A stretch of 64,000 nt of DNA. Origin: Lepidodermella squamata (taxonomy: Eukaryota; Animalia; Gastrotricha). The position numbers and the translations under genes were made by a program. The stretch covers positions 3,038,001 to 3,102,000 of the forward strand of contig JBLDXI010000019.1 of assembly GCA_047495785.1 (NCBI GenBank), written 5' to 3'. The notes beneath the pieces are model-generated. The model was not told the origin of the DNA, searched no databases, and saw nothing but the letters and a program-made list of their open reading frames with translations. The stretch's first letter is position 1, and every line of letters begins with the position of its first letter. Below, in pieces: positions 3,816 to 51,254 of the stretch.

Positions 3816-5142
3816 ATGGATCACAGGGGTCGTTATTTTTACAACCAGGCTCCTCAATACCAGCATTTAGAGGCGATTGAAGATGCATCACCTGATTATG
3901 AGATTAACGAGCTCGAGAGTAGTACAAACACTCCTAGAATCGACGAAAATTCAGAGCTAAGGCAGCATAAACTGGTATGATTACTTTTCAGCGATCTCAC
4001 GTCATGCATTTGAGCTAAATTTCTAGTACCACGAGCTACTTCTAGCCATACACCGAGATGACATGCCAGAATTTGATAGATTGATCTACCTCACCTCGAA
4101 CATTCATGATTTAGGCTACGTCCTATTCAAACTTAACGGCGATGATATAGACCAAAGTGGCGATACAATCATCCACAAAGCAGCGAGAATGGGCCGGACG
4201 AATCAAGTTGCTAAACTCATGCACATTTACCTCAAAATGCATAGCGCTGAAGTGAGGGAAAATTCAGTTTCAAGAGTCATGTGCAAATTGCTGAACCGCA
4301 AGGGCGAGACGATTCTCCACTCAGCTGCAGCAGCTGGTCGGCCTCATGTCATCGAAACCATCTTTAAAACTATCTACTCCCACCAACCTCCGCCTGTTAC
4401 ACCAGACACAAGCTCCTTGAAGGACCGTCGCAAAAGTTTCCAGAGGGGTTCAAGCCGTAGTTCGGAACGAAGTGGGGTCGATATTGATGAATTCATCAAT
4501 CATCAACAGGAGCAGGTGGAGAGACGGACAGCTTTACATCTAGCGGCTAGTTACCAGCCTCTTGGATCGAATAACGCGACAGATATAGCGAACTACGTCA
4601 ATCAGGGCACCTACGGCGGGGTTAACTCCTCCCCCGGCTATGGCTACGCTTCCTCGTCCCGTAATTCTGGCCAATACATGGCTGCAGATATGCTGATTCA
4701 TCACGGCGCGAATGTTGACGAGATTGATATGCATGGTTTGAACGCGTTTCATCTTTCTGTGATTTATGGCAATCTCGAGGTTGCGAAACAGCTGTTTTCG
4801 ACTCAGCCGAGTTTGATTAACGAGGTCACGAGTGACGGCTGGCAGAGGACGCCACTTCATCTGGCCATTCAACAGGCACAGGCTATTTTTCAAGCCACCG
4901 TTGTGCCATCTTGCCAAACGTCATCGGCTACTTTGTTCCGCGGTTGTTCCCAGCAGCCTCAGTATAGCGAGTCTATGCAGCGAGTGTTGGACATGATTCA
5001 TTGGCTGTTGCAAAACGGCGCTGATCGCCAGAAGAAAGATGCAGCCGGCAGGTTGCCACAACATGTCTTGATCATCGGAGATGTCTCGCGAGAAAAGAGA
5101 GAACTTATCAAAGCTTTGAACCGTTTCGGACTTTATCAATAA
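3816..5142 (+). CDS. Ankyrin-repeat protein, copy 1 (exons 3816-3974, 4027-5142); lacks the DSGxxS motif
   Basis: About six ANK motifs (GDTIIHKAA, GETILHSAA, RTALHLAA, LNAFHLSV, RTPLHLAI, GRLPQH); exon 1 MDHRGRYFYNQAPQ joined in frame by GTATGA..TTCTAG intron; collinear paralog at 29385. Confidence 0.9.
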
Positions 5143-5990: not shown

Positions 5991-6341
5991 TCATGATTGA
6001 TCACTAATAATTCGTTGAGCTACCACTTGCTGCAGCATGTAGTACGGAACCTTTCTGGCGCAGATAGCCCTTGACTTGAGCAATTCAGTGCATCGTTGCA
6101 TTCGCAATTTCAGCCGTGCGACCTTAACCGTGCGGATAAAGGCGATAACTTTCACTGCTTCCTCGTTGGTAATAGCTTTCATTATCTTCGTTTCTAAATA
6201 TACAGATATAGAAATGGAATTGCGATATCGTTTTATCCCCATAACAAGCTTACTTATACCGCTGATCATCAAATCCCGTTCAGAATCCAGAGCGTAACTT
6301 ATCGTCAAAAGTAGAGGCAGGACCTTCAAGATCCCAGTCAT
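5991..6341 (-). CDS. Small secreted C-x9-C family protein D, exons 6341-6254, 6193-5991
   Basis: MTGILKVLPLLLTISYA signal; 60-nt phase-1 intron GTAAGC..TTTAG; CTELLKSRAICARKVPYYMLQQVVAQRIISDQS. Confidence 0.85.
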   Translation of the reverse strand: MTGILKVLPLLLTISYALDSERDLMISGISKLVMGIKRYRNSISISVYLETKIMKAITNEEAVKVIAFIRTVKVARLKLRMQRCTELLKSRAICARKVPYYMLQQVVAQRIISDQS

Positions 6342-6967
6342 ATTGACCGAGGCTGTATGTGAAAAGTTTTGGTACATGTTTATTTGATACAAACCATTCT
6401 TCGACTGAAATGAATATGTATAGGTCTCAGCGCTGTCCTTAAGCCCTAATTAGCTTTCGAGGATTCTTAGGTGAGCCAATATCGCATCTAGTAAAAATTC
6501 TTTGGCAGAGAAGCGGTGACAAGAACTGTCTGTAATTGCCTATATTTTGTCATAAGATGATAAGACGAGAACCGCCCATGAAATCAAGGGAAAGTGTTCT
6601 CATTATTTTTCCCAATTTGCCAATTTCCATCGAAATACATACTGAATCTGAATCATACCTGAAATCATAAGATATATCGTTCGGAAGACTTCATTGAGTT
6701 TACCTCGGAATTCGGCATCAATTGAAGCTGTATGGGTCTAATCATACGGCGATGCATGAATTTCTCTCAAGGAACTCTGTAAATCGGTCTATGCATTGAC
6801 AGTGAATCCAATCTACGGTATGCCTAACAAAAAATTCACTTCTATTCCCACATAGGAACATTTTTATTACACTTACAACGGTTATGATACTATCAGTCAA
6901 AATGAATCGGCTATCAAATAATAGAATTAATAATTAATAATTTTATTCCTAATGTTTAGAATAAAAG

Positions 6968-11434: not shown

Positions 11435-11806
11435 TTATTGCTGGTTCGCTTTATTCCCCAGCAGAATCCGTTGAGCTAGTATTTGATGGCTGACATAAAA
11501 TGGGAGCTGGCCCTTGCAAATAGCTCGCGAAAATAGCTTTTCAATGCAATCTTCCAATCGCGCCTTGTTTTGCCTGATTTTAAGAGAATGAATCATAGCT
11601 ATGAGGTCCGACTGCTCACCATTTTCAATGGCTTTCTGAATCCGATCATCTACAGGAAAAACATGCGAATCATCGCATTCATTGATGAAGAAATTCCAGA
11701 GCTTACGTATCATGTATATCCTTGGAATCGGATCAACAAATGAGACCCCACAATTAGTAATGGTTGGTAATACAAATACAAGGAAGAGGAAATAGCAAAA
11801 TATCAT
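11435..11806 (-). CDS. Small secreted C-x9-C family protein G, exons 11806-11707, 11649-11435
   Basis: MIFCYFLFLVFVLPTITNC signal; 57-nt intron GTAAGC..CTGTAG; CIEKLFSRAICKGQLPFYVSHQILAQRILLGNKANQQ. Confidence 0.85.
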   Translation of the reverse strand: MIFCYFLFLVFVLPTITNCGVSFVDPIPRIYMIRKLWNFFINECDDSHVFPVDDRIQKAIENGEQSDLIAMIHSLKIRQNKARLEDCIEKLFSRAICKGQLPFYVSHQILAQRILLGNKANQQ

Positions 11807-12192
11807 TTTCTGCAGAATCAGATCTGGAGAAGCCTGAGATTTTAAATTACGAGAGTTAGAGTTAGACATGGCAAGCCAAGTCACGCTAATAATTGTGTAT
11901 TTTCATTGATTAGCCAGAACATATTTCCCTATTACTACTCCTGGATGAGCATACATTTCAAAGCCAAATTATTGAGGGCTATCACGTTTCACTTATTTAT
12001 GAGCTTCAGAAATCTGGCCCAATACGTGAGATGGGGTCTCTAAGGCTTGTTCATGAAAGCTGCATTCATCCTCAGTCTGAAATCTGACACTGAAACGCCT
12101 TTTCGCGTATCTAGGGTCTGAAAAACATATCAGTCTAAAAAATATCTTCAGAAATTAATTAGAAAATACAATCAAACATTGCGGTACATCTT

Positions 12193-29384: not shown

Positions 29385-30738
29385 ATGGATCCAAGAGGTT
29401 ACTACTACTACAACCAAGCACCCCAGTTCCGACACTTGGAGTCGGTACGATCCGATAGCGATAAAGTTACAACTGATGATGCAATCAGCGAAGTGGACAG
29501 TGGACTCAATTCAGTAGTTCCTAATATCTCAGCTGAAATCAGACAATACAAATTGGTATGCTTTTAGCACTGAAATTTTATACCATTAATCAACTTCTCA
29601 ATTAAAGTATCACGATCTCGTTCTTGCTATCCATCGCGATGATGCATTTGAGGTGGATCGCCTCATTAACTACAACGCAAATGTGAGCAACCCGGATAAT
29701 ATTCTCAACATGGAGTACATCCTATTCAAAATTCATGGCGATGACATTGACCTAGGCGGTGATACCATCATCCACAAAGCCGCACGAATGGGTCGGACCA
29801 ATCAAGTGGCCCAACTAATGAAAATGTACTTCAAACTTCATGCGAACGATATAAGAGATACGTCAGTCTCTCGAGTTTTATGCCAATTGCTGAATAGAAA
29901 GGGAGAAACGATTTTGCACGCCGCGGCTGCAGCTGGCAGGCCACATGTTGTCGAGATAATCTTCAAAACAATTTACACCCATCAACCACCTCCTGTAACT
30001 CCAGAAAGGACTCCGCCGAGTCGTCGGAAATTGCTGAGGACCATGTCAAGTCGAAGCTCTGAGCGGAGTGGTGTTGATATTGATGAATTCATCAATTGCC
30101 AACATGAGCAGGTCGAAAGAAGGACCGCCTTGCATCTAACAGCTAGCTACCAGCCCCTTGTTGCTAATAACCCGACAGATATCGCGAATTACGTCAGCCA
30201 AGGCAATTACGGCGGGGTGAATTGCTCGCCTGGGTATGGCTACGCATCACTGAACAGGAACTCCGGCCATTGCATGGTTGCAGATTTGCTCATCTACCAC
30301 GGGGCGAATGTTGATGAGATTGATATGCATGGCATGAACGCTTTTCATCTTTCAGTCATGAATGGCAATGTCGAAATTGCGAAGCAGCTGTTCGATCAAC
30401 AGCCAAGTTTGATAAATGATGTGACAAGCGACGGCTGGCAGAGGACCCCGCTTCATCTTGCGATACAGCAAGCTCAGGCGATTTTTGAGCTAACCGTTGT
30501 GCCTTCTGCTTCAACTTCACATGCGTTGACGTTTCGAGGGTGTTCTCAGCTGGCACAGTACCCCGAAAGTATGCAACGGGCTTTGGATATGATTGATTGG
30601 CTAATGCAAAACGGTGCGGATCATCAGAAGCGTGATGCGGCTGGCCGATTGCCGCAGCACACCTTGTTAATTGGGGACCCATCTCGTGAGAAAATAGAAC
30701 TGATCAGAGCCCTGAATCGATATGGGCTATATCAATGA
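29385..30738 (+). CDS. Ankyrin-repeat protein, copy 2, IkB/Cactus-like layout (exons 29385-29555, 29608-30738)
   Basis: Exon 1 encodes DSGLNS (29496-29513); 52-nt GT-AG intron joins in frame to about six ANK repeats; ends RYGLYQ. Confidence 0.9.
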
Positions 30739-31806
30739 ATCCTTGTAAGCATGCATTGTCGAGCAAAATATTGTTTAGTGAGATATAATTGTGAGTCGTT
30801 GTGGTTTGTGATTGTTGAGAATAAATTCGTCAACTTTAGGTCATAAGTATTAGGTTTTCTGAAGAGAGAGATACCGATTTTTTTATTTCTTATTTTCCCG
30901 AACGAAGCTCGAAGCTCGAAGGCACATTTACAGATCCACGGCGGTCTCCTCCAGGCAATGAAAAGCTGCGAAAGGCTTGTTTTCGATTTTCGATGCGAAT
31001 CAATTGCGCGCTCCCAATTGGTCGATTCGAAATAAACGGGGGAATCTCGCTAATGACACTGCAAAACAGAACAGCCGTAGACTTATTCCTACATATTCCT
31101 AGCTAATAATCTAGATATTAATCTAATAATCTAAAATTAGTTTTACCTCCGAAGAAACCACTATTTTGATCATTTTCTACCTGGGATTCAAAGGATTTGT
31201 TCACTTGAGATTGAAGCAAATTATTCGTGAAAAGCGGCGCCCCTAAGGTGACTCCATTAGCTATTCTGAGGCTCTACATAGTGGAATCTGTTATCTTGGA
31301 AGTTGAAACTGTCTGGTGTCTAATTATCCAGGAACAGTGTATCCGTCGCGCTCTTCAGAATCTGCAGAATCTGTGTGAAACGTGTCAGATTCTTCAGAAT
31401 CGACTGAGTATCTCAGTAAAAGAACGATTCGAGCACGTTGAGTTCAGTGGATTTTATAGAAGGTTGGCTGGGGAAGCGATAAACATGTGGACAGCTGACA
31501 GACCTGATTGTCGCTTCAAGAGCTCCATATTATGACGCAATTCGACTAAGTGTACACGAATCTCGAGCTGCTGTGCCAAGAAACGAACGAAGTGTATGAT
31601 AAAGATAAGTCCTTAGTCGCTTTAGTTGGTCCGAATCTACCAAGGGCTAAGTCTTCCCAATCGATGGTTACCCACGTTCGCAACTATCCTGCAGACAACT
31701 TTATGAAACAAGCGGACAACCGAATACACCCAGTGTTCATGAGGAAAGTAAATATTAATATTTGTCCTGAAGTTGCTTTTGAAATTGTCTTCGAAAGGTT
31801 TGAAAA

Positions 31807-32288
31807 ATGCTCCCTTGGTCTGCGTGATTCCAACTGTCTGCATCGCTTGCGTAGATCCGGTGTTCAATCATCCGGCGTTCCTCGTCAGACCTACCTTTCC
31901 GAGCTAAGGAAGCAAAATCGTAATAATCAACTTACTTTTTCAACGATTGAACCGGTTTTAAAGAGTACTTCGTTGAAAAGTTGCGGATGTTGGCAGAGAG
32001 GATTTGGTGAAAGATTTGCTACATGCTGTTCAGAACGAACGCATCAGCCGAGCCGCAGCCAAATAAGATAAGATTATGATTAAGCGTGGCAAGACCAAGA
32101 GATCAAGGAAGCCTGACAACAATTCAGCCAAGATTCCGTCACCCAGAACCACTAACCTAGAGACTAATAACAATCAGCCAACACCCTTAAATCCACACGA
32201 CCCCCACGTTTATCGGCAATCATCGGCAATCATCGGCAATCATCAAAATGGCTTTGTGTTACTCGCTTCAGCTCAGAAAAGCTTTTAA
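31807..32288 (+). pseudogene. Pseudogene copy of gene K
   Basis: Aligns with 25182-25614 including upstream GTAAATATTAATATTTG; early TGA, donor changed to GG, frameshifts. Confidence 0.8.
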
Positions 32289-45829: not shown

Positions 45830-47050
45830 TTGTGGAGAAACCACTATTCTGATTATTTTCAACCTGGGATTCAAAAGATTTTTTTTCTGAGTTTCTACAG
45901 TGGAACCTGTCATCTCGGAAGTTGAAACCATATCATGTCAAATTATCCAGGAAACGTGTATCCATCGCGCTCTTCAGAATCTGTATGAAACGTATCAGAT
46001 TCTTCAGAATCGTAGCCCTTGATGGTGTTTCTTGCAATATCAATGAAATAATAGTTGATGGTAGTCAGATTGAATAATATGAATCTCGATTCTATTCATC
46101 ATTCATCTACCCTCGAGTCGTTAAATGATAAGAAAAGTTGCAATTCGATTGGATAAATATAATAGTGGCATGAATTCTGTTGGTAAACACCTGACTTGTC
46201 GATGAAGTAAGTGGAATAACTTCAGCATTTACACCTTCAGCAGCCCTGGGACACAACACTCTCCATAAACTCAAGCAGAAGTCAAAAAAATTTTATTCTG
46301 CATTCACTTGAAAATACAATACAGCCAATTATTTTTTAGCGTTGCGTATTATTCATTGAAGTCTTCATTTTCAGGATAGTTATTCTCGAAATTTCTTTAT
46401 CAGCTCATGACTTTTTGTAAAAACGCCACGTAAGAATATCCGCTTCGCTTTCATCAGTGAATATTAGCAATATTTACTTAGTCACTTTACTGACGGTAGC
46501 CAGGCGTAGGAGTCGCGTTTATGCCTAAACACACAAGCCAGTAAGCCATTGTCACCCACGCAAAATGAAGCTCGTTATACCATGTGGAAGGGAAATGTCT
46601 CCTTTGCAACCATATATCAGCTATCAAATGATGATGATGATGATGATGATGATGACAAATGTTCGGCAGATCGACTGAGTATCTCAGTAAAAGAACGCAC
46701 GAGAGTCGAACATCCGATTTGAGCACGCTGAGTTCAGGATTTCTTTATAGAAAGTTGGCTGGGGAAGCGATAAACATATGGCCAGATGACAGGCGTGATT
46801 GTCGCTTCAGGAGCATCATTCAAGCTCCATATTATGACGCAATTCGACCAAGTGTGCACGAATCTCGATGTGCTGTGCGAGGAAGGCGGTGATGAAGTGT
46901 ATTGTAAAGATAGTTGTAAAGATTGTAAAGAAAGTCCCTTAGTCGCTTTGGTTGATCCGAATCTACCAAGCGCGAAGTCTTCCCAATTGATGGTTGCCCA
47001 TGTTCGCAAATATCCTGCAGACAACTTTATAAAACAAGCGAACAACCGAA
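45830..47050. repeat. Duplicate of 31150-31730 degenerate sequence, interrupted by a ~650-bp insertion ending in (ATG)n
   Basis: Collinear matches (e.g. GGCTGGGGAAGCGATAAACAT; CCGAATCTACCAAG); insertion ~46013-46670; (ATG)9 at ~46628-46654. Confidence 0.75.
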
Positions 47051-48081
47051 TGCCAAATGTTCATTGCCTTGCAGTTAAATTATAACTTGAATCGCTGAAT
47101 TGTTGATGTGACGTATATCCCCAAAATGCAAAACCCGCCGCAGTAACTAACTGCAGGATTATAGCTTGATCCGCTTTGGAAAGAATAGCATTGATGATAT
47201 CGGAGAGCATTGGGTATGTGTTACGCCAGCGTGGGCAGCTATCATGCGACCCACAGCAACAGGACTCGAGCTGTTGAGCTATAAGCGACAAGTTAGTCGG
47301 TTAGTTGTTGAAAGATGTCCATTTCTGGACACCCAGGAAGACCGAGTATTGTGATTTCTAAAACTAATTAAAGAAAGGCAATTATTAACAAGATTATGTT
47401 ATGAGGAAATTTTCTAGTGTCAGTCGGTATGAGAGTTACCTGGATTCGCAGAGACATTGGGAGCGTGCAACGTAAACTCGATGCATTAGTTGCATGATCG
47501 GCGGATTGCTTCTTGAGCAGAAACCCAAGACATTATTTTGGAAGGAAGATAGTAGTGTAGCAAGGCAGCTATACGACTGTCGAACCGCGACCAATGTTTC
47601 GTGGATTGTCATATCATTCAGTGCGCTAAACATGTCATTTCGAGACAAAGACAGAGCAAAGCTTATTCATCATTAGTCAAATATTATTGTCTTTTTCCGC
47701 GCTAAAAATTGATTACAGACTTTTCGATGAAAGATAACGCAAGCTTTTTTAAATTTAAGAAAAATAATTGCTTATTAATAATTATTCAAACATTATTGTT
47801 TATTTTTCGCGCTAAAAAGGGGGTTTTGCGACGAATCCACGTGCATAGAAATGACAGCTGAACTTGCTTGGATTGCTGCCACCAGGATGAAGTTGTTAGC
47901 GGCACCCTGGATCGCAAGCAACGACGATTCATCATGCGCAGCTACTGAGATGAACACGCTGGCAGGCCTATAAAACACGGCTAAAACTGATGAAAAATTC
48001 ATTCTTTCTCAGCATCAACTTTTCATCAAAAACAATTTCATTTTCGAATCTTTCATCAGTCGTTTAATTCAAAGCTAAAGA

Positions 48082-49174
48082 ATGATGTTCAAGCTTACGA
48101 TAGCAGCCTGCTTAGTAAGTTTTAGAATTAATTTCTGATCTTGATTAACATTTTATGAATCAATTTTTGAAATAGGTGGCAGCAGTCATTTCGAATCCCC
48201 TCATGGAAGCCATGAGAGGCGAAGAAAACTACCAAGAAGCCAAGCGTGGTGAGGAAAACTACCAGGAGGCCAAGCGTGGCGAAGAAAACTACCAAGAAGC
48301 CAAGCGCGGTGAGGAAAACTACCAGGAGGCCAAGCGTGGCGAAGAAAACTACCAGGAGGCCAAGCGTGGTGAGGAAAACTACCAAGAAGCCAAGCGTGGT
48401 GAGGAAAACTACCAGGAGGCCAAGCGCGGTGAGGAAAACTACCAGGAGGCCAAGCGTGGCGAAGAAAACTACCAGGAGGCCAAGCGTGGTGAGGAAAACT
48501 ACCAAGAAGCCAAGCGTGGTGAGGAAAACTACCAGGAGGCCAAGCGTGGCGAAGAAAACTACCAGGAGGCCAAGCGTGGCGAAGAAAACTACCAGGAGGC
48601 CAAGCGTGGCGAAGAAAACTACCAAGAAGCCAAGCGCGGTGAGGAAAACTACCAGGAGGCCAAGCGTGGCGAAGAAAACTACCAGGAGGCCAAGCGTGGT
48701 GAGGAAAACTACCAGGAGGCCAAGCGCGGTGAGGAAAATTACCAAGAAGCCAAGCGTGGTGAGGAAAACTACCAGGAGGCCAAGCGTGGCGAAGAAAACT
48801 ACCAGGAGGCCAAGCGTGGCGAAGAAAACTACCAAGAAGCCAAGCGCGGTGAGGAAAACTACCAGGAGGCCAAGCGTGGCGAAGAAAACTACCAGGAGGC
48901 CAAGCGTGGTGAGGAAAACTACCAGGAGGCCAAGCGCGGTGAGGAAAATTACCAAGAAGCCAAGCGTGGTGAGGAAAACTACCAGGAGGCCAAGCGTGGC
49001 GAAGAAAACTACCAGGAGGCCAAGCGCGGTGAGGAAAACTACCAGGAGGCCAAGCGTGGCGAAGAAAACTACCAGGAGGCCAAGCGTGGTGAGGAAAACT
49101 ACCAGGAGGCCAAGCGCGGTGAGGAAAACTACCAGGAGGCCAAGCGTGGCGAAGAAAACTACCAGGAGGCCTAA
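48082..49174 (+). CDS. Prohormone/neuropeptide-like precursor, 343 aa, 32 x GEENYQEA separated by KR (exons 48082-48114, 48176-49174)
   Basis: TATAAAA at ~47968; spliced signal peptide MMFKLTIAACLVAAVISNP via GTAAGT..AAATAG; 30-bp repeats differ only at synonymous positions. Confidence 0.92.
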
Positions 49175-51254
49175 TCATTTTGATTCAACTCGACAACAGA
49201 CTTTGTAATTTATTCCCCTGCAAGGGAAGAGACATGATCTAATTTCTTCAAATATTCACTCCGATTCATTTTAATTGCTTCCATCTTATTAATCATAAAT
49301 TCTTATAAAAAAACCATTCTCATTGGTGGTTGGCAAAATATAATATCTGTTGAAATCTGTTATGCAAAACTATAAAATCGTTCTACCACGGCAATAAATA
49401 ATGCAGTTACTATTTCTAACACGCTAAACTTGTTTTTTGAAAGATTAAGATCAAGGAGAGAGCAATAAAGCTTGTAAAGGTGTAGCACAGCTGCGACCAC
49501 TGGAAGTACAGGGTGTAAGGATGTGCTGGCCGGCATCGCGCCATCGAACTAACTAGCTTGTGTGATAATTGTGTGATAATCAATTAGGCAGTGCGATGTT
49601 CGCATTAGTTATTTCTCTATGATATTTAAGGCCATGAATGGCAGATCCTCAATGTTCGATTCGTTCTCAACTCTCAACAAAGTAGTAAAGAGTAGTGCCT
49701 GGCCAAGTCTTCACATTTCCCAGACACAGGGTGAGCCGCCATGGGTGACCACACCTGCGAAATTGCAGCACGAAGTAAATATCGCGACTTCCGCACTAGA
49801 ACAGTGTGCCGGAATAAAAACAAAAGGCGTAAAACTAACTTTTTGCATCTTCGCCAAGTCAGTCGCGTGCCTGATCGCTAGAAAAAAATTTGAACGCCAG
49901 TTTTTTCTGCGCAAGTCGCGATATTTAATACACGCGATATTTCACAGAATTTGATTCCGAATGGCAAATTCGACTCTAACTCGAACAGGATGCCTCCAAA
50001 ACACCGTCATTGGCATTTCTCACCGTTAAAGGGCTGATAAAAATTGGGCCGCCATTGGGTGCTTTGCTGCATCGGCCATGCCGACGATACCGAGATCATT
50101 CACGGGCATCTGGGTTCCTCACAACAATGAAGCGTTGCTACTGCGATGGTGAAGCAGGAATTAGAAGTGGCATTTTCCGCGCGGTACCACACGTTCAACA
50201 GCCGACACTTTTAGAGCCTTAGAGCCAGGATGAGCTAGCGATTATTCAAGCGCTTCGGCAAAATTTTCTTGGTTCCCATTAGACTCGAGGGTAGTTTCGG
50301 CTCTAATTACTGAAATTCTCGTTACCTCTCGTTACCATGAGTACAAGTGCGTCAAGCAAATTGCCAATTCTTGTAACCTCACGCCGTGAATCGACTGCGG
50401 TACCCTCACGTTTGACAGCAACATTATGTTTCCGCTGTTTCGGGTCAAAGTCTATCGTCACCGCACTTGGTGACTTGGTCGCTTTGTCGCCTGTCGGCTG
50501 AGTCGAAAGGCCAAAAAAAGTTTCATAGTCAGTCATTCATAGAACAATAGTAACAGGCGTCGAAGCGGACAAGTGGCTAAGTGCAACCGATTTTTTGGGA
50601 TTTTGTGCGACCGTGCGGCGCTGTGCGCGACGCTAGTCCAGCGATACCGGCCGCTCAAAGTCTGGGAAAAGTTTCTTATTCCCATTTGCACGGAATGATA
50701 GACGACGATACGCCCTCGTACAATCCTTGTTACGAGTAGCGATGACAGTAGGCTGAAAATCCTGAGAGTGTGTTTAAATATTCGATATTTTCGATATTTT
50801 CGATATTTTCTCGATACAAAGACAACACGCAAATATATTCAGGACAGAGAAACTTGTTTTTTTAGTTAATTTAATTACTTAGGATTGGACGAATTCTTAT
50901 TTTCATAGTGTCTATCATGTCACTCAAAGTAAAAAGTCAGACATATCATTTAAATTTCGAGCAGTGAGAAGGCTATCAAAGTAACAAAATTTATATCATT
51001 CCTGGACATTTGAACGTTTGCGACAACTTAGTTTATTAATTAGCTTATGAAGGAAGTATGACAGGCTTCTCGGGAATTAGGCGACAGGATATCTAAAGAA
51101 CAAGACCGAAGAACACTTCTAACAGCAAATTAGATACGTTCCATCTGTTTCAAGTCGGAAAATTCGCAGAAACGCAAAGACATAACAGTAGCGAGGTTCA
51201 AGTTAATAAAACTATAAGAGGCTGGATGTAAACGTATTTTCGGCATGTTGCGCC

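Follow-up and report, generated by a model that had tools for sequence, protein, structure and literature searches.

[quoted passage not shown] Exon 1 contributes 11 codons from the ATG at 48082, and exon 2 (48176-49174, 332 amino acids) contains the leader, the array and the stop. By inspection, the signal peptide runs across the splice junction: an n-region (MMFK) is followed by 12 hydrophobic residues, LTIAACL from exon 1 and VAAVI from exon 2, and then by SNP. The 14-residue leader in exon 2 continues the hydrophobic core with VAAVIS and then reads NPLMEAMR. Its junction with the first unit is monobasic (AMR|G), and the leaders of the paralogues described below end in KR or RR. Against a threshold of at least three near-identical tandem cores, we counted 32 identical ones. 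The original prediction had described a spliced signal peptide and 32 units without amino-acid variation, the last of them ending at the stop without KR, and our re-reading of exons, intron and array matched it exactly, with TAA standing right after the last Ala. The coordinates of these features, and of the paralogues, are collected in Table 1.

Table 1. Features of the 32-unit gene, in window positions, and members of the paralogue family, by contig (C) and locus (L) positions in the genome.
Feature	Position	Strand	Remark
Promoter box 1, AGCGGCACCCTGGATCGC	47898..47915	+	about -184 from ATG; conserved in long- and short-form family promoters
Promoter box 2, family consensus AGCGCAACTACTGAAATGAAC, 3 mismatches in 32-unit gene	47935..47955	+	conserved in family promoters
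TATA box, GCCTATAAAAC context	47969..47975	+	113 nt 5' of ATG; recurs in family promoters
Exon 1, coding part, MMFKLTIAACL, start of signal peptide	48082..48114	+	82-91% DNA identity to paralogue exon 1
Intron, 61 nt, GTAAGT...ATAG, GT-AG, phase 0	48115..48175	+	same position in at least 13 paralogues
Rest of signal peptide and short leader, VAAVISNPLMEAMR, single Arg at end	48176..48217	+	conserved family-wide by alignment; paralogue leaders 74-86% identical
Array, 32 GEENYQEA units and 31 KR spacers	48218..49171	+	sequence reading, TRF
Stop codon TAA	49172..49174	+	immediately 3' of final-unit Ala; core-then-stop also in all ten long arrays
3'UTR motif CAAGGGAAGAGAC	49221..49233	+	common to type 2 and type 3 paralogues at equal distance from stop
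Poly(A) signal AATAAA	49393..49398	+	221 nt 3' of stop
Type 1 (GEENYQEA-KR)	window gene; C54:1.911 Mb; C2:987 kb		32 units; 29 units with few GEDNYQEA; 21 units
Type 1b (YRPREEN[LV]QEA-KR units)	C19:2.911 Mb
Type 2 (GEA[AG]YEEA-KR)	C2:867 kb, 885 kb, 893 kb		31, 36 and 48 units
Type 2, further GEAAYEEA gene	immediately upstream of C2:987-kb gene		end alone read
Hybrid, leader VATVAANPLFEAKR, GEAAYEEA units then GEENYQEA units in one chain	G000:C2:994.6-995.05 kb (L057:4624-5049)	-	12 cores
Type 3 ((R)EAGYEEAQR)	C29; C40		24 units; 9 units
Four short forms, 76-89 aa	L010:2128-2334; L011:1710-1904; L013:2268-2462; L058:6081-6302	-; +; -; -
Divergent cargo, family-type leader VASVAANPLYEAKR, then Gln/Gly-rich GGQQG-like repeats	C2:~984.8-985.3 kb (L009:295-810)	-	no acidic units
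Truncated copy, 63 aa	C19:2.339 Mb (L002:1501-1750)	+	Tyr to Cys or Phe in two units; frame enters unrelated sequence

We examined how the array varies at the nucleotide level. TRF described it with a period of 30, 31.6 copies and 90% nucleotide matches. The 30-nt unit occurs in eight nucleotide variants that differ at six columns, all of them third codon positions and all synonymous; finding no non-synonymous column among the six has a probability of about 3e-5 given 5.3 synonymous sites per 30. The variants follow the order ABCBDEFBDEBDDCBDFGBDCBDFGBHBDFBI, in which a 7-unit (210-bp) block is duplicated with one mismatch. This duplication is a recent unequal exchange laid over older synonymous divergence, and together with the six synonymous columns it bears out the higher-order pattern of codon variation claimed earlier. 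In three GEENYQEA arrays at different loci, the majority units differ from each other at 2-3 synonymous sites and encode an identical peptide. Across the 78 units of the GEENYQEA arrays we counted 10 synonymous and 5 non-synonymous variant alleles, the latter mostly singletons, which gives a per-site non-synonymous/synonymous ratio of 0.11. Together these counts show that purifying selection acts on the peptide. The array is also open in the +2 frame (window 48246-49208) and in frames of the minus strand (48128-49178), and one alternative frame would give a strongly cationic repeat (KKTTRRPSVA-like, with K+R at 39%) that could mislead gene callers. These extra open frames are an artefact of the 30-nt period. 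The GEENYQEA frame alone is invariant in amino acids and joined to the signal exon; the other open frames vary.

The gene carries upstream and downstream elements that it shares with its paralogues. Between -200 and -1, paralogue promoters are 66-76% identical to that of the 32-unit gene, against 48% for a shuffled control. When we searched the genome for box 1 at two or fewer mismatches, 10 of the 12 matches were family promoters; at three mismatches the counts approach those of the control. Box 2 gave 13 matches at three or fewer mismatches, compared with 2 for a reversed-pattern control, and 10 of the 13 lay at family members. The two boxes are essentially private to this peptide family. 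Of the 15 family promoters listed, 10 (9 of 14 distinct genes) have a TATA box between -107 and -119, and all long-form paralogues have AATAAA or ATTAAA at +209 to +225. All ten codons of the unit are those preferred by the actin and tubulin genes of the genome (AAC, TAC, GCC, AAG, CGY and GGY), and the array has a GC3 of 0.67, against 0.64 for the actin and tubulin genes and 0.48 for the window's ordinary genes. This codon use suggests that the 32-unit gene is highly expressed.

Elsewhere in the window we found ankyrin genes, a Cys-loop channel, an AMOP-domain gene and a mariner transposase. The channel and the AMOP domain, together with the tyrosylprotein sulfotransferase (TPST) and furin genes described below, identify the genome as that of an animal. 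The published assembly of the species was built from HiFi reads of MDA-amplified DNA (PMC11660948). Two of the ankyrin-repeat genes are intronless paralogues lying about 25.6 kb apart (4063-5142 and 29653-30738, both on the plus strand), with similar small ORFs near them (5991-6392 and 11435-11884, minus strand), an arrangement that suggests segmental duplication. Two further plus-strand ORFs, at 46786-47085 and 31550-32071, share the motif PNLP.AKSSQ.MV.HVR.YPADNF.KQA.NR and are probably relics of one repeated element; one of them is some 1 kb upstream of the 32-unit gene. A RiPP-like reading was set aside, as the several kb around the 32-unit gene contain no gene for a modifying enzyme. The original prediction had also offered the peptide as an anionic partner for cationic proteins of a surrounding cluster. 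This proposal found no local support: we found no cationic secreted genes in the 64-kb window or in those paralogue flanks that were read, and the promoter boxes occur essentially at family members alone. A functional pairing with cationic proteins would need no linkage and stays a remote possibility.

DNA and protein searches of the genome, followed by reading of the loci, revealed at least 14 paralogues in tandem clusters, with 9-48 copies per long array. At least 13 of them retain the signal cassette, with introns of 52-68 nt at the same position. The 32-unit gene has the most homogeneous KR-type array of the family. One gene combines GEAAYEEA and GEENYQEA units in a single precursor, as multi-peptide precursors do. 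The four short forms possess the family promoter, signal exon and intron, followed by two or three degenerate Tyr units whose basic sites are weakened and by a C-terminal tail, Ser-rich and only weakly amphipathic, that ends in NF[VQ]; they may represent the ancestral form of the family. In the Gln/Gly-rich gene the secretory cassette appears to have been reused for a different cargo, and the truncated copy is likely a pseudogene. The family is, as judged from these alignments, a conserved secretory cassette with divergent cargo, a pattern familiar from gland effector families. Two loci on contig C2 have further peculiarities. The 21-unit GEENYQEA gene (C2:986.5-987.3 kb, minus strand) departs from the others in its signal exon, MMYKLALTAFL, and has no family promoter; it begins about 130 bp past the stop of the upstream GEAAYEEA gene, a spacing that may reflect read-through or an operon-like arrangement. 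The 36-unit GEAAYEEA gene (C2:883-887 kb) recurs with the same predicted protein and flanks at C135:3.5-7.5 kb, on a contig of 15.8 kb, and this second copy probably reflects a haplotig left uncollapsed or a duplication in the assembly.

We then compared the junctions between units across the family. KR occupies all 31 internal junctions of the 32-unit gene, and a dibasic pair is present at 252 of 253 internal junctions in the ten long arrays of the family. All ten arrays end with a core followed directly by the stop, although this ending may be a single inherited feature and not ten independent observations. The dibasic pair is kept through a one-residue shift from AKR|G in type 2 to AQR|R in type 3, with KR|R intermediates occurring in type 2 arrays. 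It is also kept in type 1b, in which the uncleaved unit has a net charge of +1, compared with -1. Because the pair survives both the shift and the change of charge, it is the cut site that is conserved rather than the charge. The intact chain carries -1 per 10 residues and the octapeptide without KR carries -3; a role as polyanion alone would give no reason for a Lys and an Arg to be retained in every unit.

The genome encodes enzymes that could process such a chain. At least ten loci with a convertase P-domain (P_proprotein) are present, and an ORF on contig C28 matches furin with E = 1e-66. Two of these P-domain loci in the 121-Mb genome lie 8 kb apart (C46:1,076 kb and 1,084 kb), and the convertase repertoire may be expanded. 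The earlier description of a KR-punctuated precursor is thus upheld by the dibasic junctions, by ten paralogous arrays with the same core-then-stop ending and by furin/PC-type convertase genes, and cleavage at the dibasic sites is what these features predict. A TPST gene is also present, with exons at C21:1457.2-1458.3 kb that match TPST1/2 structures (E = 2e-26 and 4e-22). Since furin-like convertase and TPST genes are both present, cleavage and tyrosine sulfation are both possible. The Tyr of GEENYQEA has Glu at -3, -2 and +2, with neither Cys nor an N-glycosylation sequon; its context is less favourable in having Asn at -1 and, in the precursor, K/R at +4/+5. From this context the residue is a plausible sulfation candidate. 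The predicted mass (M) of GEENYQEA is 938.362, or 1018.319 when sulfated (sulfate +79.957 Da), and these exact values make cleavage directly testable by mass spectrometry. In all 32 units Ala precedes the basic pair or the stop and there is no Gly, which agrees with the earlier view that the octapeptide is not amidated.

To find relatives outside the genome, we searched with exon 2, since exon 1 (11 amino acids) is too short to search. A word-indexed protein search with exon 2 (332 amino acids) and with the leader joined to four units (54 amino acids) yielded no candidates, and an exact-product look-up of exon 2 yielded no match; neither blank carries information on expression. Nothing in the 32-unit gene or its paralogues scored above the Pfam cut-offs, whether as a neuropeptide family or as Granin. 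An exhaustive hmmsearch with a nine-member family profile against 1.84 billion representatives returned 341 matches at E < 1e-3. Those inspected were rejected as unrelated periodic repeats of 5 or 10 residues (for example pentapeptide-repeat proteins and a YPETTRPEKT mucin-like protein), and neither the unit pattern nor the leader start was seen among the best 150 of the 341. The best score in the ESM atlas, 0.85, was uninformative; degenerate back-translated DNA patterns had no matches in metagenome contigs in either of two scans, and the peptide strings led to no paper in the full-text literature. Two look-alikes were discarded: P0016 is an ORF over a (AGAAGTACCA)n microsatellite, and P0026 (GNDGYHSAKR x8) lies on a satellite-rich metagenome scaffold, lacks a signal exon and is not acidic. 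The GNDGYHSAKR-like array, on the eukaryotic scaffold ERZ23487155 (L077:1509-1826, plus strand), has a 30-nt period, and its G, Y, A, K and R stand in the register of GEENYQEAKR. The octapeptide had not been recognised from its sequence at the outset, and Pfam, the exhaustive hmmsearch and the literature strings likewise place it in no known peptide family; as far as the searched collections show, from which near relatives may be missing, the family appears to be an orphan.

Taking these observations together, we consider that the 32-unit gene has about an even chance of encoding a bulk-secreted polyprotein, a gland product that is cut into free octapeptides; the monobasic junction before the first unit counts against it. 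The chain would enter the secretory pathway by its signal peptide and be cut after each Lys-Arg by a furin/PC-type convertase, and a carboxypeptidase would take off the K and the R. Each translated chain would thereby release about 32 free GEENYQEA peptides with a net charge of -3, non-amidated and perhaps sulfated on Tyr. These would act as an exocrine product, for example in defence, in release from adhesion or as a counter-ion, rather than as a neuronal signal. Because at least 14 genes share a homologous, family-private promoter, one dedicated cell type probably makes all the paralogues in bulk, and it is from such production that the exocrine reading is drawn.

The strongest competitor, which we regard as possible but rather unlikely, is that the chain stays intact as a secreted repeat protein of 39.8 kDa with a net charge of -34, a charged helix or polyampholyte that would form part of a matrix, coat, egg-shell or glue, or pair as a polyanion with the polycationic secreted proteins. 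AF2 run without an alignment modelled it as two long helices (residues 7-178 and 187-330, pLDDT 71.5), the spacing of E, K and R permits salt bridges from i to i+3/i+4, and a long polyanion would be a better partner for coacervation than octapeptides. However, pTM was 0.24, long helices are the usual AF2 outcome for charged repeats, so that single-sequence models of this kind are weak evidence, and each 10 residues include Gly and Asn, which are poor helix formers. An intact helical protein is physically plausible, and the model keeps this alternative alive without favouring it. What tells against it is that the intact chain is a weak polyanion with both K and R in every unit, whereas the feature that the family conserves is the dibasic pair itself, through the register shift and even where the unit charge is positive. 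If the chain is in fact uncut, its perfect periodicity would make it an unusual charged protein.

That the gene is a precursor of a classical neuropeptide, hormone or pheromone, with neurons or endocrine cells releasing an octapeptide that acts on a receptor, seems improbable to us, even though its layout matches that of multi-copy neuropeptide precursors, purifying selection on the peptide is strong and the genome has convertases. The number of genes, at least 14 in tandem clusters with 9 and up to 48 copies each, and codon use like that of highly expressed genes make a bulk gland product more likely than a neuropeptide; there is also no amidation signal and no Pfam neuropeptide family. In addition, the shared promoter and signal cassette drives Ser-tailed short forms and a Gln/Gly-rich repeat protein, which gives the family the look of gland effectors. 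That the locus is a non-coding 30-bp satellite, open by chance in several frames, has in its favour that all array frames are open or nearly so. This reading is effectively refuted by the single frame that is invariant in amino acids, with six of six changes synonymous, by the canonical intron that links this frame to a signal exon conserved in at least 13 paralogues and by the presence of a TATA box, a poly(A) signal and promoter conservation.

If the chain is cut as the polyprotein reading predicts, one translation event would provide 32 copies of a peptide that lies outside described families, and there are at least 14 such multi-copy genes, a large investment for a microscopic animal. To our knowledge, Gastrotricha is a phylum with almost no molecular physiology. 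Once the cell that makes the peptide and the molecule it acts on are identified, a new secreted effector or a charge partner of the animal's abundant cationic secretions could come to light; either would bear on reversible bioadhesion.

Several known systems resemble the 32-unit gene in part. Invertebrate FMRFamide and Antho-RFamide precursors carry about 20-36 peptide copies with a C-terminal Gly, often with acidic spacers, and are single neuronal genes. The gene described here is like such precursors in its signal peptide, its tens of identical short peptides, its basic sites and its range of copy number, but its peptide is itself acidic and unamidated, KR is the sole spacer and there are at least 14 paralogues; neither Pfam nor hmmsearch detected sequence similarity to FMRFamide-type precursors. 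Granins and other acidic pro-pieces are dibasic-rich, often Tyr-sulfated and routed through the regulated secretory pathway, and they can neutralise and condense cationic cargo. Acidity and abundant dibasic sites are common to both, whereas the perfect tandem array is unlike granins and has no match to Pfam Granin. The fungal KEX2-processed repeat proteins (KEPs) have a signal peptide and repeated cores with kexin sites of the KR type on either side; they are secreted and form lineage-specific families, and their functions are mostly undescribed (PMC7329392, PMC9769878, PMC6339444). The layout is the same as in KEPs, including those of the alpha-factor type, but the gene lies in an animal genome and is unrelated in sequence, which makes it KEP-like and not a member. 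In Drosophila, Baramicin A is a precursor from which cleavage at furin sites yields several tandem repeat peptides, and it is a bulk-secreted effector rather than a neuropeptide; its gene is immune-induced, its cleavage has been demonstrated, and its peptides are longer and non-acidic (PMC8423362). Both encode tandem peptides at basic sites in one precursor, although in our case the peptides are shorter and acidic and cleavage is predicted from sequence.

A further comparison is with adhesion. Gastrotrichs bear adhesive tubes. They are placed as sister to flatworms (PMC11660948), for which the duo-gland model postulates a small anionic secreted molecule that causes detachment by binding to the Lys/Arg repeats in a cationic cohesive protein; the releasing vesicles of Macrostomum are reported to be protein-poor and polysaccharide-positive (PMC6410801). 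The likeness to this releasing factor is an analogy, that of a small anionic secreted molecule, and the 32-unit gene is known from its sequence alone. By that analogy, the octapeptides, possibly sulfated, might be the gland's small polyanion set against the animal's secreted polycationic proteins, either as a duo-gland releasing factor or as a granule counter-ion. We hold this to be a distant prospect, less probable than the neuropeptide reading; if true, this would be the first genetically encoded peptide system to serve in de-adhesion or as a counter-ion. With no amidation Gly, no sequence relationship and no fungal origin, the gene stands outside the neuropeptide, KEP and Baramicin groups, and yet it would function like a multi-copy peptide polyprotein. 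The family is an orphan with a familiar polyprotein layout.
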